From contig JAAOMT010000041.1 in assembly GCA_016748015.1 (NCBI GenBank), positions 1 to 5,110 on the forward strand: DNA of 5,110 nucleotides, written 5' to 3'. Position 1 is the first letter of the stretch. Every line of letters begins with the position of its first letter. Below the pieces are notes generated by a model that was given only the letters and a program-made list of their open reading frames with translations, was not told where the DNA came from and did not search any database. The DNA comes from Geosiphon pyriformis uo1. Taxonomy: Eukaryota; Fungi; Glomeromycota. This document shows, one piece after another, positions 1-5,110 of this stretch. A program made the translations under genes and the position numbers.

Positions 1-91
1 GGATAGAATCTTCATCTTGATTTTGTTGCGTTGGGCAAAGCGTTGCGGGAAACTTTGTCTGTCAACCGATCTATTTGCCTGAAAGAATGTA

Positions 92-96
92 GTGAA
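92..96 (+). other. Candidate left copy of a 5-bp target-site duplication (GTGAA)
   Basis: The five bases before the 5' LTR. Copia elements typically make 5-bp TSDs, but the right flank is outside the window. Confidence 0.35.
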
Positions 97-334
97 TGTT
101 GGAGACCGAGTTTGAGAGTCAGGTCAAACTAGTCAAATGTGAGAAACTAATTCGTGGAAAGTCGTGAATGACGTGAGTACAAAAGAGATTCGAAGACAGA
201 GACTGATTTCTATGGAAGAAGCTGATGATCCTAGAGCAGAGTGAATAGGAGTAAATTACTAGCTCATAATTTGGAATTGGAAACAATTGGTAAAGCTAGC
301 ATTACTACTGTCGAGTCAAGGGAGCCTCCAAACA
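97..334 (+). repeat. 5' LTR (238 bp)
   Basis: TGTTGGAGACC...GAGCCTCCAAACA; matches 4873-5110 with no difference found by eye. Terminal inverted repeat TGTT/AACA, extending to TGTTGGAG/CTCCAAACA with a one-base bulge. Confidence 0.98.
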
Positions 335-346
335 TACTTCGAAGTA
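335..346. promoter_or_regulatory. 12-bp perfect palindrome at the primer-binding-site position
   Basis: TACTTCGAAGTA equals its own reverse complement and begins at the first base after the 5' LTR. No TGG-initiated tRNA complement is present here. The palindrome is certain; its priming role is inferred. Confidence 0.75.
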
Positions 347-382
347 CTAAGGAGAAGGCCCCAACAATTGGCAACAACGACA

Positions 383-1066
383 ATGGACGTGGAAACAACT
401 ATCGGAACAAAGGCTGTACAGCTACCAACTTTTGATGGAGATCACAAGAAGTTTCAAACCTGGTGGACTAGGTTCAAAGCCTATGGCAGTGTGATGAGAT
501 TTGGACAAGCACTTACTGGTAAGGATGAGACAGATTTGCCAGGTAGCGATGCCGAGGCAGTTGATGTGTCAACTGAGGCAGGAAAGAAGAAGGATGCGGC
601 AAGAAAGCGCAACAACCTGGCAATGGCAAACTTTACCATGGCATTCACAACGGAGGCATTGATGGCGCTGGTGTATCGGGCGCAGGACGATGACTGGCCT
701 CAAGGGAAAGCGTCAAGGGTTGTGAGGGCGCTAATGAAGAAGTACATGCCGAATGACAAGTTGGCAAAGATTGAGATCAGAGCTATGTTGGCAAAGGTTA
801 GTATGAAGAAAGATGATGACCCTGCCACACTCTTTGAGCAAGTCAGTGAGATTGAGAACCGTGCTGCGGCACAGGGACAAACGATTGAAGAGTCAGACCT
901 TATTGCCGTGATCATGAATGCTGCCCCGAAGGAGTACATCCCAGTGATCACAGCTGAGCAGCGAGCAAAAGGAGACCTCTTGGATGTGTTGGACCTTGAA
1001 GAGGCCATGACCAAACAGTACCGCTTGATGATGGGCGGAAGAGATTCTCAAAGTGATGGGAAGGGA
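383..1066 (+). other. Gag capsid-like region (boundaries approximate)
   Basis: N-terminal LPTFDG..KFQTWW.RF.AY resembles the copia Gag F.G.N(Y/F)..W start; a helical region with DWPQG and APKEY follows; it lies upstream of the zinc knuckles. Confidence 0.75.
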
Positions 1067-4000
1067 AATGAAATTGCCTTGTCGGCTTTCGGTGGTCATT
1101 GTTACCGATGCAATGAGAAGGGACATAAGGCAAATGCATGCACTAAATCTGAAAATGAGCTGCCCAAGGGCAAGAAGGGCAACAAGAATCGCGGTGGAGG
1201 CAAGAAGCGGTTCAACGGAAAGTGTCGCAAGTGCGACAAGCAAGGACACCGAGAGGCTGATTGCTGGGAAGATGAGGCCAATAAAGACAAGCGACCAAAG
1301 TGGTTCAAGCCTGGAAACGTGGGCGGTGAGACTGCTGCAGTTGGAATCAGTGGTGTGAAGAATGACACTGATCAAAAGATTGAAGTTTTACTGATGGGTA
1401 TTGGGAAGTTGACGTTCCCGACGGTCCTGGACTTCTTGACGGACCCCAATGTGTGGATAGCGGACACTGGCGCCACCGGAAACTCAGCCAACAGCATGAT
1501 AGGTGCAGTGAATATCCGAGAGGCATCGAAGGAAGATGGTATCATGATGGGCAATGGAAAGAGTGAGAAGGCACAGAAGATATTTGATCTGCCCGGAGTG
1601 CTTTGTGACAAGCATGGAAATGAACTTAAACGTATTATGCTGAGAGATGTGACCATGTGCAACAATGGAAAGTTCAACCTCTTCAGCATCACAAGGATGC
1701 AAGAACAAGGATGGAAGCTAGGCGGTGACAAGGACGCAATCTGGATCACCAAGGATGGCCAAGAGATCCGTTTTGATATCAAGATTAAGACAAAGCAAGG
1801 TGCACTCTACTGCATGTACCTAAAACGAGACGTTATGGAGCACGCGAACGCACACGTAAATGGTATTCAGGCACCAATGTCGGTCACAAAGACTGTGACG
1901 ATTCAGCAGGCACATGATTGGCTCGGTCACCCAAGTGAGCAAACGACGCGAGCAATTGCAGAGAATCTTGGATGGAAAATTACACGTGGAACACTAGGAC
2001 CCTGTGAGGCTTGTGCTGCTGGTAAGGCACAGCAAAAGAATGTTCCAAAGGAATCGAATCATCAACCATCAAAAGTCAACGCTGAAAGGATCTTCTTGGA
2101 CATCGCGACAATCAAACAACCTCAAGACAAGTTAGTCACGGTAGCAACAAAGAACAAGTGGAGGATCATGGTTGATGAAAGGACACAATTGAAGTTCAGT
2201 GACTTCTTTGAGACAAAGAATGGCATGGTCGAGCCTACATTAGAGCAAATCAACAAGTGGAAGCAACAAGGACTTACGGTGAAGTTCATTCGAATGGACA
2301 ATGCAGGCGAGAACAAACTACTTGAGCGCAGGAGCATGAGCAGCGACTGGAAAATGAACATACAATTCGAATATACGGCAAGAGATACTCCACAGCAGAA
2401 TCATCTAGCGGAGTTGGGATTTGCAACAATTGCAAGCCGTGGGCGAGCGATGATGCACAGAGCATATATTCCACTGGCAATCCGGTACAAGATATTCTCA
2501 AAGGCATTCAAACTGGCCACACTGCTGGATGGGTTGGTGGTTATTGAGTTGGATGGAAAGAAGGCATCCCGATATGAGCATTTCTTTGGAAAGTTGCCCG
2601 GGTTTGCAAGTTACTTGCGCACGTTTGGCGAAGCGGGTACAGTGAAGATCAGAACTATTGGAACGCCAAAGATTGCAGATAGGGGGGTTCACTGCTTTTA
2701 TGTTGGCCCCGCACTAAATCATGCCCCCGATTGTTGCGAGATGTATGACCCTGTAACAGGGCGAATTCACCAAACACGAGATATTACTTGGTTGAAACGG
2801 TTGTACTACGAGCGACCAGCAAACATGCCTACCCTGGGTGGACTGTTGGATGTCACAACAGATGGAGAGATGGCCCAAGAGACACTGGCTATTGAGGCAA
2901 ACACCAATCAGCATTTAGATGGCGATGAAGCCGGGGAGAGTAACTCAGACAATCAACCTGGCACTGATGACACTGACGATGATGCTGAGTCTGTTACTGG
3001 GGGAGAGATGAAGAACAACACAGCAACCAGCACTACAGCATCAGGACGGGTGATCCGACCACCCAGCAGATTGATTGAAGAAATGGGAGCGACGGCATTG
3101 GCAGCAACCCGAGCAGCAGAGTATGAGCTTGCGCTGACTCCAGCCGAAGAGAACTACCTTGCAGCCATGAAGGAATTACAAGAATTTGCATTTGTTGGCG
3201 CAGGAATTGGTGGTGGTTTTGAGAACACTGAGGAGCTACATGCCATGAAGTATGAGGAAGCGATCAAACGCGACAGGGAAGGATGGGAGAAAGCAATCGA
3301 GGAAGAAAAGAAAAAGATGGACCATTATAATGTCTTCAAACCCGTTTCACGTGAAGAATTACCAGAAGATGCAAAGATATTGACATCAACCTGGGCAATG
3401 AAGCAGAAAGCCGATGGAACCAAAAGAGCAAGAATTACAGCCCGAGGATTCGAGCAGGTAGACGGTGTTCACTACGATTCAACGAACAAATCCGCACCAG
3501 TGGCAAGTGATGTAACAATCCGCATTGTACTGGTACTGTCAATTATGGCGTACTGGTGGCGGGAGCTGATGGACGTACGTGGCGCATTCTTGAATGGTCG
3601 ATTTGAAAATGGAGAGGTACTTTACATGGAGATTCCAAAGGGATTCGAGAAATGGTACCCAGCAAATTCGGTACTCCTTTTACTGAGAGCAATCTATGGG
3701 ACCATCCAAGCTGCGATCCAGTTTTGGAGAGAACTTTTGAGAGCATTTTGGTCAATGGGTTACAAAAGAAGTAAGGCTGACAATTGCCTGTACTATAAGT
3801 GGACAAAAGTGGGCTTGGTACTCTGGATATCTTGGGTTGACGACTTGTTGGTGACTGGACCTAAAGAGGCAGTTCTACAAGCCAAGAAAGAAATGACAGA
3901 TCGATTTGATTGCGATGTGGTCGGCGAACTAAAGGAATATGTCGGATGTAAAGTAGATTCAGGCCCCGGATGGATGAAACTGACACAACCAGTAATGATC

Positions 4001-4843
4001 CAAAGTTTTCGAGATGAATTTGAACTACCAAAGGGCGAGAATCCGACGACCCCAGCGGCACCTATGACTACGTTGGTACCAGGCGACCCACGCCAAAATT
4101 TGAAGCCTGACAAGTTGAAGATTTACCGGAAAGGTGTTGGGAAATTACTACACATGATGCGTTGGACCCGGCCGGATGTCTTAAATGCGGTGCGGGAGCT
4201 GTCCAGATTTATGAGTGGTGCAAGTTTGGCGCACTTTCATGCAATGTTGCGAGTACTGAAGTATTGTGAATGCACCCCAAACCGAGGACTACTATTGAAA
4301 CCAAAGCGACAATGGGATGGAGACCCAAATTTTGAGTTCGAAATTGAAGGGAAGTCGGACTCCGAGTATGCAAAGGATGTTGCTACACGACGAAGTGTGA
4401 ATGGTTGGTCGGTATTCTTGGAGGGAGCACCGGTTGTTATGCGAAGCAAAATGATGTCCATTGTGGCATTGTCCGTGACAGAAGCCGAATTGTCTAGTGC
4501 AACGAATTGCGCACAAGACATGCTCTACGTAATGAGAATTATGGAGAGCATTGGATTGAAGGTCAAGAAGCCTATGATTTTGAAGGCTGACAACAAAGGA
4601 GCTGTCGATCTAACGAACAATTGGAGCGTTGGAGGAAGGACTCGACATATCGATGTCAAACAATATTTTCTACGCGAGTTAAAGGAAGCAAAGATCATCG
4701 ACACTATCTGGGTGAGAGGCGAAGATATGACAAGCGACGTCTTTACTAAGAATCTTGGACGACGAGATTTTGAAAAGCACATCACCGCATTTGTGGGCGA
4801 TGATGAATACATGTTGACTGGAAGGTCCAAGTCCGGAGGATGA
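383..4843 (+). CDS. gag-pol: Gag-Pol polyprotein (1486 aa from ATG 383)
   Basis: Single frame with no stops or frameshifts. The first in-frame ATG is at 383 in a strong context (ACAATGG), downstream of the LTR. The track's start at 287 is a TTG inside the LTR. All catalytic motifs are present. Confidence 0.96.
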   Translation: MDVETTIGTKAVQLPTFDGDHKKFQTWWTRFKAYGSVMRFGQALTGKDETDLPGSDAEAVDVSTEAGKKKDAARKRNNLAMANFTMAFTTEALMALVYRAQDDDWPQGKASRVVRALMKKYMPNDKLAKIEIRAMLAKVSMKKDDDPATLFEQVSEIENRAAAQGQTIEESDLIAVIMNAAPKEYIPVITAEQRAKGDLLDVLDLEEAMTKQYRLMMGGRDSQSDGKGNEIALSAFGGHCYRCNEKGHKANACTKSENELPKGKKGNKNRGGGKKRFNGKCRKCDKQGHREADCWEDEANKDKRPKWFKPGNVGGETAAVGISGVKNDTDQKIEVLLMGIGKLTFPTVLDFLTDPNVWIADTGATGNSANSMIGAVNIREASKEDGIMMGNGKSEKAQKIFDLPGVLCDKHGNELKRIMLRDVTMCNNGKFNLFSITRMQEQGWKLGGDKDAIWITKDGQEIRFDIKIKTKQGALYCMYLKRDVMEHANAHVNGIQAPMSVTKTVTIQQAHDWLGHPSEQTTRAIAENLGWKITRGTLGPCEACAAGKAQQKNVPKESNHQPSKVNAERIFLDIATIKQPQDKLVTVATKNKWRIMVDERTQLKFSDFFETKNGMVEPTLEQINKWKQQGLTVKFIRMDNAGENKLLERRSMSSDWKMNIQFEYTARDTPQQNHLAELGFATIASRGRAMMHRAYIPLAIRYKIFSKAFKLATLLDGLVVIELDGKKASRYEHFFGKLPGFASYLRTFGEAGTVKIRTIGTPKIADRGVHCFYVGPALNHAPDCCEMYDPVTGRIHQTRDITWLKRLYYERPANMPTLGGLLDVTTDGEMAQETLAIEANTNQHLDGDEAGESNSDNQPGTDDTDDDAESVTGGEMKNNTATSTTASGRVIRPPSRLIEEMGATALAATRAAEYELALTPAEENYLAAMKELQEFAFVGAGIGGGFENTEELHAMKYEEAIKRDREGWEKAIEEEKKKMDHYNVFKPVSREELPEDAKILTSTWAMKQKADGTKRARITARGFEQVDGVHYDSTNKSAPVASDVTIRIVLVLSIMAYWWRELMDVRGAFLNGRFENGEVLYMEIPKGFEKWYPANSVLLLLRAIYGTIQAAIQFWRELLRAFWSMGYKRSKADNCLYYKWTKVGLVLWISWVDDLLVTGPKEAVLQAKKEMTDRFDCDVVGELKEYVGCKVDSGPGWMKLTQPVMIQSFRDEFELPKGENPTTPAAPMTTLVPGDPRQNLKPDKLKIYRKGVGKLLHMMRWTRPDVLNAVRELSRFMSGASLAHFHAMLRVLKYCECTPNRGLLLKPKRQWDGDPNFEFEIEGKSDSEYAKDVATRRSVNGWSVFLEGAPVVMRSKMMSIVALSVTEAELSSATNCAQDMLYVMRIMESIGLKVKKPMILKADNKGAVDLTNNWSVGGRTRHIDVKQYFLRELKEAKIIDTIWVRGEDMTSDVFTKNLGRRDFEKHITAFVGDDEYMLTGRSKSGG
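1100..1141 (+). other. CCHC zinc knuckle 1 (nucleocapsid)
   Basis: CYRCNEKGHKANAC = CX2CX4HX4C (aa 272-285). Confidence 0.95.
1223..1264 (+). other. CCHC zinc knuckle 2 (nucleocapsid)
   Basis: CRKCDKQGHREADC = CX2CX4HX4C (aa 313-326). Confidence 0.95.
1439..1831 (+). other. Aspartic protease domain (boundaries approximate)
   Basis: WIADTGAT active site (catalytic Asp codon at 1463), MGNG flap-like motif, and NLFS equivalent to copia NLLS. Confidence 0.9.
1904..2812 (+). other. Integrase (HHCC, DDE core and C-terminal region; boundaries approximate)
   Basis: HDWLGH...CEAC zinc-binding motif (1913-2014); catalytic D at 2099 (IFLD), D at 2297 (RMDNAGE), E at 2411 (TPQQNHLAE); C-terminal LRTFG...RDITW. 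Confidence 0.93.
2933..2941 (+). promoter_or_regulatory. Candidate central polypurine tract
   Basis: GGGGAGAGT is identical to the PPT/LTR junction at 4865-4873; a second GGGGAGAG lies at 3000-3007. Confidence 0.55.
3245..4291 (+). other. Reverse transcriptase, copia (RVT_2) type, with connection region (boundaries approximate)
   Basis: RARITARGFEQ, MDVRGAFLNG (Asp at 3572), LYMEIPKGF, AIYGTIQA, WVDD (3833-3844), YRKGVGKL, TRPDV. Confidence 0.96.
4340..4795 (+). other. RNase H, Ty1/copia type (boundaries approximate)
   Basis: SDSEYA (D 4358), SVTEAE (E 4487), ADNKGA (D 4589), RTRHID, SDVFTK (D 4736). Confidence 0.95.
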
Positions 4844-4861: not shown

Positions 4862-4872
4862 AAAGGGGAGAG
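4862..4872 (+). promoter_or_regulatory. 3' polypurine tract (plus-strand primer)
   Basis: AAAGGGGAGAG, 11 consecutive purines directly abutting the TG of the 3' LTR. Confidence 0.92.
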
Positions 4873-5110
4873 TGTTGGAGACCGAGTTTGAGAGTCAGGT
4901 CAAACTAGTCAAATGTGAGAAACTAATTCGTGGAAAGTCGTGAATGACGTGAGTACAAAAGAGATTCGAAGACAGAGACTGATTTCTATGGAAGAAGCTG
5001 ATGATCCTAGAGCAGAGTGAATAGGAGTAAATTACTAGCTCATAATTTGGAATTGGAAACAATTGGTAAAGCTAGCATTACTACTGTCGAGTCAAGGGAG
5101 CCTCCAAACA
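4873..5110 (+). repeat. 3' LTR (238 bp)
   Basis: Direct repeat of 97-334; directly preceded by a purine tract; ends in CA at the last base of the window. Confidence 0.98.

Follow-up and report, generated by a model that had tools for sequence, protein, structure and literature searches.

How does a long terminal repeat (LTR) retrotransposon begin reverse transcription when a perfect palindrome stands at the position of its primer-binding site (PBS)? The question is raised by the window, by which we mean the whole 5,110-nt stretch of DNA analyzed here; it contains one complete Ty1/copia element on a contig of a 128-Mb assembly. The features of the window are:

1–96, forward strand: 5′ flanking DNA of the insertion, outside the LTR repeat.
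97–334, forward strand: 5′ LTR of 238 bp, identical to 4873–5110; reads TGTTGG...CCAAACA and ends in CA.
315–329, forward strand: U5 arm of a predicted U5-leader stem (fold of 311–372).
335–346, forward strand: perfect 12-nt palindrome TACTTCGAAGTA at the PBS position; read directly, and kept in relatives.
351–372, forward strand: leader arm of the predicted U5-leader stem (fold of 311–372; comparison of own and swapped partners in 43 elements).
383–4843, forward strand: single intact gag-protease-integrase-RT-RNase H open reading frame of 1486 aa, with domain matches.
4862–4872, forward strand: polypurine tract AAAGGGGAGAG, abutting the first base of the 3′ LTR.
4873–5110, forward strand: 3′ LTR of 238 bp; the contig stops at its last base.

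The reading frame opens with an ATG at 383 and closes with a stop codon at 4841–4843. RVT_2 is matched at 6.8e-33, and the copia-type gag, gag-pre-integrase and integrase SH3-like domains all lie before the reverse transcriptase (RT); two CCHC knuckles are among the invariants of the polyprotein alignment. With its gag-protease-integrase-RT-RNase H order and copia-type RT, the element is a member of the Ty1/copia (Pseudoviridae-type) group, and the direct LTRs with TG...CA ends and the polypurine tract before the 3′ LTR, all present in the window, agree with that assignment. The contig ends at 5110, which makes the outer edge of the 3′ LTR and any target duplication unreadable from the window. 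The LTR end was placed at CA by means of flanked relatives (L020, L041, L061, L081, L128 and L129), two of which have verified 5-bp target-site duplications, CCGTT in L128 and GATGT in L129. The interval 94–334 returned by a repeat tool corresponds to the 5′ LTR together with three flanking bases that resemble the polypurine tract, one of them mismatched.

The palindrome TACTTCGAAGTA starts without a spacer after the LTR end ...CCAAACA (334). It is the sole match to itself in the window when up to two mismatches are allowed, it occurs as a single exact copy in the 128-Mb assembly, and the window holds no other perfect palindrome of 12 nt or more. The TGG closest to the LTR edge lies at 369–371, 35 nt downstream. 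A preliminary description of this DNA had placed a perfect 12-bp palindrome flush with the 5′ LTR and the nearest TGG at 369, and had taken the intact reading frame and the identical LTRs to argue against a decayed site; each of these details is correct. Some 1.2 palindromes of 12 nt are expected by chance anywhere in 5.1 kb, compared with 1 in 4096 at a fixed position; since the palindrome is conserved family-wide, chance is removed as an explanation.

This conservation was assessed at the LTR/leader junctions of related elements. An alignment of 23 polyproteins, used to scan metagenome contigs, identified 80 related loci, a scan of prokaryotic genome bins added one mis-binned contig, and four database proteins that were looked up led to four full elements with flanks. 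The junctions of 57 relatives, from metagenomes and one eukaryotic contig, were read. Loci were searched for palindromes, then for near-palindromes after CA, and finally all others that had a gag start and sequence upstream of it were checked; scoring is limited to loci with a gag start and an upstream region, and the first finds came from the palindrome scan. The resulting alignment comprises 58 junctions (53 distinct sequences) and leaves out L046, whose palindrome is a perfect 10-mer, TACTCGAGTA.

All 58 aligned junctions carry a palindrome or near-palindrome at the LTR edge, preceded by the LTR terminal dinucleotide CA, or by TA or CT in 3 of 53. At least 11 different perfect 12-mers are found. 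TACTTCGAAGTA is the majority form, and the others are AACTTCGAAGTT, AACTTTAAAGTT, TACTTTAAAGTA, CACTTCGAAGTG, CGCTTCGAAGCG, TTCTTCGAAGAA, TTCTTGCAAGAA, TACTTGCAAGTA, TTGTTCGAACAA and TACTAGCTAGTA. The outer triplets TAC, AAC, CAC, CGC, TTC and TTG each occur with their own complement on the other side, and the four-base centers of the perfect sites (TCGA, TTAA, TGCA and AGCT) are all self-complementary. The imperfect sites differ by one or two changes, mostly CpG transitions (TTCAAA, TTTGAA), with a G·U state in L024. An A·C mismatch at pair 2:11 recurs in three to four loci, including L028, L084 and L122 (TACTT[CT]GAAGCA), two of which also have a U·G center; this shared mismatch is either a tolerated state or decay inherited within one subclade, and its presence in several loci means that perfect symmetry is not absolute.

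When the site is treated as six nested pairs over the 53 distinct junctions, in an alignment free of gaps, 97.8% of the cells are standard pairs. Double-sided changes occur at five of the six pairs, in 27 cells; ten further pair types are present. The covariation values were approached by none of 500 shuffles and by no slid register, and the result was the same for the first 46 distinct sequences. The central pair 6:7 is CG in 39 sequences, TA in 6 and GC in 3, and the five departures are all the CpG transition products TG or CA; pair 5:8 has switched from U-A to A-U in L128. The variants are spread over an RT tree of 48 elements and imply at least 12 independent compensations, with at least two origins of CAC...GTG, two of the AAC...GTT ends, at least five of the TTTAAA center and two of the TTGCAA center. 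Variant palindromes are carried by elements with full-length reading frames (L020, L026, L035, L041 and L050). A copy whose LTRs are 93.5% identical has a CpG-decayed site, and copies with LTRs 99–100% identical have perfect ones; stops or frameshifts are found in 5 of 7 copies with imperfect sites compared with 17 of 48, which is a trend only. Palindromy is thus kept in the relatives while the sequence varies, through compensatory changes, as the preliminary description had proposed to check. As judged from these sequences, the selected property is self-complementarity and not a particular sequence.

The surroundings of the palindrome are also predicted to be structured, a feature absent from the preliminary description. 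Most elements are predicted to form a stem between the terminal ~20 nt of U5 and the ~20 nt downstream of the palindrome; the last three to four bases of the LTR and a few leader bases form an internal loop, and the palindrome sits on top. The register of this U5-leader stem differs between families, and we therefore used an alignment-free comparison in which duplexes with the element's own partner are set against duplexes with swapped partners. In 43 non-redundant elements, duplexes of the U5 end with the element's own downstream segment average −14.6 kcal/mol, and those with swapped segments −9.6 kcal/mol. The own partner ranked first in 10 of the 43 elements and among the top three in 20, and its mean was reached by none of 10,000 permutations. 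Taken alone, the stem of the window is not significant (−14 kcal/mol, z = −1.06 for the fold of 311–372). One relative, L051, keeps the palindrome and lacks ~13 nt of the leader arm of the stem relative to its close relative L081; L051 has five in-frame stops and is likely a dead copy.

We propose that the 12-mer is the primer-binding site and that its primer is encoded by the element itself, pairing from a second RNA copy in place of a host tRNA; we consider this reading about evenly balanced between right and wrong. The start of minus-strand synthesis sets the U5 edge of the LTR, which means that base 335 must be paired with the 3′ end of the primer. Among the relatives the site differs in its first three bases, so the primer 3′ end has to vary too, which a host RNA cannot do; the one sequence that changes in step with bases 335–337 is the 3′ half of the palindrome itself.

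The proposed sequence of events would be as follows. Twelve nucleotides on a second element RNA, either the dimer partner or a 5′ fragment, would pair with the site over all 12 bp, with the U5-leader stem holding the palindrome at its top, where the partner could reach it. The partner RNA would end, or be cut, after its own palindrome (base 346), which would place a 3′-OH opposite base 335, and the reverse transcriptase would then copy U5 from base 334, exactly the LTR end. We infer, on the model of RNase H cleavage in Tf1, that a cut after the palindrome would make the primer; the duplex would be RNA:RNA, and one site would act both as dimer contact and as primer site. Were the cut to occur in both partners, no PBS complement would remain on the minus strand for the second strand transfer; the model would thus require that one template stay uncut or that primer fragments be supplied from a separate pool. 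During plus-strand synthesis the site would be copied from the partner's palindrome, so that a mutation in one half would appear, mirrored, in the other half one cycle later. Such mirroring would make it easy for compensated variants to arise.

Could the palindrome instead be a dimer-initiation or packaging signal only, with reverse transcription starting at the same edge by other means, such as a primer of a few bases or primer-free, structure-guided initiation? Palindromes in loops are the classical retroviral dimer-initiation sites, and the layout of a stem with an apical palindrome fits this reading. By sequence, the site has what is expected of a dimer-initiation element, namely six pairs that are kept, the central one included, with compensation in five. 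Palindromes in or near the PBS are also reported to aid dimerization in retroviruses and in Ty1 (for example, PMC6844567 and PMC8096270). Against a role in dimerization alone, the palindrome directly adjoins the LTR in all elements and leaves no space for another PBS, and any base-paired primer would have to vary along with the first three bases of the site. We know of no LTR element with primer-free initiation. We therefore regard this alternative as unlikely, though deserving of serious consideration.

The palindrome could also prime within a single molecule: the 12-mer would form a hairpin on the U5-leader stem and be cut after 346, and its 3′ arm would then prime on its 5′ arm. RNAfold does predict an apical hairpin of 4–5 bp on the U5-leader stem in most elements, and RNAalifold, run on the ungapped alignment, recovers four outer pairs with covariation and no others; the flanking stem shifts register between families, which limits RNAalifold to these pairs. 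A hairpin is, in addition, the published model for the fungal GalEa elements (PMC5445492). Three observations speak against this reading: the pairs of the would-be loop covary, the isolated hairpin has no predicted stability, and the cut would part the leader from the coding RNA on one and the same molecule. Hairpins need at least three unpaired loop bases, and folding of the 12-mer would therefore place pairs 6:7 and 5:8 in the loop, where they would be free to vary. Because these central pairs covary, selection appears to act on the full 12-bp duplex of two site copies. The predicted energies of the isolated 12-mer are 0 kcal/mol for the hairpin and −15.1 kcal/mol for the homoduplex, and the homoduplexes of the other perfect variants range from −10 to −21 kcal/mol. 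The preliminary description had left both versions standing, the site folded on itself or paired with a second genomic RNA; covariation and predicted energies favor the second, pairing in trans, and disfavor the first. Self-priming by a hairpin is, in our judgment, quite improbable.

At the level of DNA, the palindrome might be a symmetric site for a dimeric protein, or it might have arisen by chance. Palindromes are typical of protein-binding sites, and one of 12 nt is expected by chance in 5 kb. A bound protein would, however, be expected to keep the bases that it contacts and not to swap them symmetrically. States of the G·U type occur (L024 and the TG centers), the site abuts the LTR without exception in the elements read, and the comparison of the covariation with shuffles excludes chance. 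We give this reading very little weight.

Binding of a host tRNA, a tRNA fragment or another host small RNA is the rule for nearly all LTR elements, and the TTCGAA core resembles the T-loop consensus. No tRNA with 10 nt or more complementary to 335–354 was found among 34 distinct tRNAs (30 assembly loci), a set that belongs to an assembly which is probably not the true host of the element. The best complementarity, 7 nt at 347–353, lies off the LTR edge; the next best is the 6-nt T-loop word TTCGAA. Hence the claim that the element has no tRNA-type PBS stands, and of the outcomes named in advance as contrary to self-priming, neither a tRNA with such complementarity nor relatives that conserve sequence but not symmetry were encountered. 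At least 11 palindromes with symmetric changes are incompatible with a fixed tRNA, the centers TTTAAA, TTGCAA and TAGCTA lose the T-loop consensus, and a perfect 12-nt palindrome cannot fit one tRNA arm. This alternative is close to refuted, and we hold it to be extremely improbable. Mimicry of a T-loop by TTCGAA was considered separately and rejected; the loop would have 6 nt, not 7, and the center variants are without the invariant C. No tRNA genes were found in the window or in 20 long related loci, and a scan of the window against Rfam with E up to 1 returned no family.

Self-priming of the Tf1 type, in which the first bases of the element transcript fold back onto the site, is the mechanism used by Tf1/sushi elements and could draw on a 7-nt match in the LTR of the window (TTCGAAG at 189–195), but the window has no second copy of the site with two or fewer mismatches, the longest LTR match complementary to the site plus 6 nt averages 5.7 nt compared with 5.5 nt in control regions (43 elements), and a fold-back offers no reason for a palindrome, which makes this reading most improbable.

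The closest described counterpart of the present site is that of the fungal GalEa copia elements, which have no PBS; their LTR edge is instead occupied by a palindrome, A|CTGATCAGT or A|CTAATTAGT, accompanied by a second, complementary box further downstream and, in some cases, by a larger hairpin extending into the LTR (Donnart et al. 2017, PMC5445492). Its authors found that the site fits neither Tf1 nor a dimer-initiation site and left the mechanism open; they place GalEa, the diatom CoDi clades and yeast Ty on one deep copia branch (PMC5445492). The Conserved Hairpin Site of GalEa and the site described here thus both belong to elements of the deep Ty/CoDi/GalEa branch in which a palindrome replaces the tRNA-type PBS at the 5′ LTR edge, and the GalEa variants, too, differ at symmetric positions (CTGATCAGT and CTAATTAGT). 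The two sites differ in several respects. The GalEa palindrome has 10 nt and includes the last A of the LTR, whereas the present one has 12 nt and starts after the LTR. In GalEa the second box, CHSeq2, lies 12–41 bp downstream as an inverse complement with a fixed A/A mismatch; no such box was found here, where the best downstream match to the core 10-mer is distributed as in control windows. The present palindrome forms the apex of a predicted stem of U5 and leader, its sequence and host group (diatom-like) differ from those of GalEa, and its protein clade probably does as well. In a comparison of motifs alone with PMC5445492, the TRPDV and WVDD-type motifs of the window are nearer to metazoan GalEa/CoDi than to the fungal KSRLVI/QTDD/CQPEA set. 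Relative to GalEa, the new elements are the length and sequence of the site, its start after the LTR, the lack of a second box, its position at the apex of a U5-leader stem and the evidence of the central pairs for trans pairing.

Other systems share parts of this arrangement. Tf1 is likewise independent of tRNA and uses its own RNA, with an RNA:RNA duplex of ~11–12 bp at the PBS and a U5 stem in the structure (see also the discussion in PMC5445492), and in both cases the primer would be generated by cleavage at the duplex edge; the partner in Tf1 is the 5′ end of the same transcript and its PBS is not palindromic, whereas here the partner would be the same site on another molecule. SL1 of HIV-1 places a self-complementary sequence atop a stem for trans pairing with a second genomic RNA, as the present site is predicted to do. 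The SL1 palindrome has 6 nt, lies apart from the tRNA PBS and does not prime; the present palindrome occupies the PBS position, and there is no other PBS. Drosophila copia and yeast Ty5, with their hemivirus type of priming, are also copia-type elements without a TGG...-type PBS; their sites match internal initiator tRNA-Met and are conserved in sequence, in contrast to the present site, which matches no tested tRNA and varies symmetrically. Certain Thalassiosira pseudonana copia families are reportedly annotated in repeat databases as self-primed via a palindrome. In the papers searched, which covered CoDi primer sites and self-priming by copia elements of diatoms, we found no other description of the 12-mer site; the CoDi paper does not discuss primer sites (PMC2806351).

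The priming mode is a defining trait of a retroelement. To our knowledge only three solutions are established, namely the 3′ end of a tRNA, an internal tRNA fragment and the 5′-end fold-back of Tf1, and the GalEa site has stood as an unexplained fourth case since 2017. The present clade supplies dozens of diverged elements, a motif that aligns without gaps, compensation at five of six pairs and discrimination between trans pairing and a hairpin, which turns an "unusual PBS" into a specific and testable model. It may represent a further priming mode, in which an RNA dimer primes itself and a single 12-nt site is dimer linkage, primer and PBS, in a large copia clade common in diatom-rich environments; we put this broader proposal forward tentatively, as somewhat less probable than even. 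Tools for LTR annotation in which a tRNA-type PBS is obligatory will overlook or misjudge such elements, for which the palindrome provides a simple marker in a copia clade abundant in aquatic and soil metagenomes. Silencing based on tRNA fragments would not touch elements that have no tRNA site.

The carrier of the element is probably not the fungus of the assembly. The contig has a GC fraction of 0.47, compared with a median of about 0.32 over 30 loci of 3 kb on large contigs of the assembly. The polyprotein has 295 homologues, most with the same domains; its relatives reach 58% identity over residues 480–1486 and come nearly all from environmental metagenomes, and the diatom Amphora coffeaeformis is the only named eukaryote among the 120 matches listed. 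A Logan contig of the probable source sample carries the element at unit length. Another contig, from a further run (X4) of the same sample, matches 2–97 of the window and then continues into unrelated sequence, as an empty site would, which fits a polymorphic insertion whose copy, with its identical LTRs, is very young. We conclude that the contig probably derives from a diatom-like organism co-sequenced with the fungus and carries a young insertion. Runs of two other studies hold pieces of the element (138–388, 1162–1925 and others) at 99–100% identity, and the carrier therefore occurs in several unrelated samples; the element was found in no RNA run.

A scan of IMG/VR found no relatives of the element, and in a scan of bacterial and archaeal genomes only two mis-binned or chimeric MAG contigs matched. 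Three records (L122, L123 and protein P0012) are eukaryotic copia sequences filed as bacterial, under "Gammaproteobacteria" MAGs and "Gloeomargaritales cyanobacterium"; in L122, GC-rich, bacterial-looking sequence follows abruptly after the element, which suggests a chimeric long-read contig. Many metagenome contigs of ~5 kb (L019, L027, L046, L052, L053, L068 and others) are circular permutations of the element with identical ends of 59–127 nt, most simply explained as an assembler artefact of the two LTRs and not as evidence for circular DNA. Finally, one contig of the assembly (C202; ~10.5 kb, GC 0.52) carries a dense cluster of at least 10 tRNA genes; it stands apart from the other contigs of the assembly and is possibly organellar or foreign.
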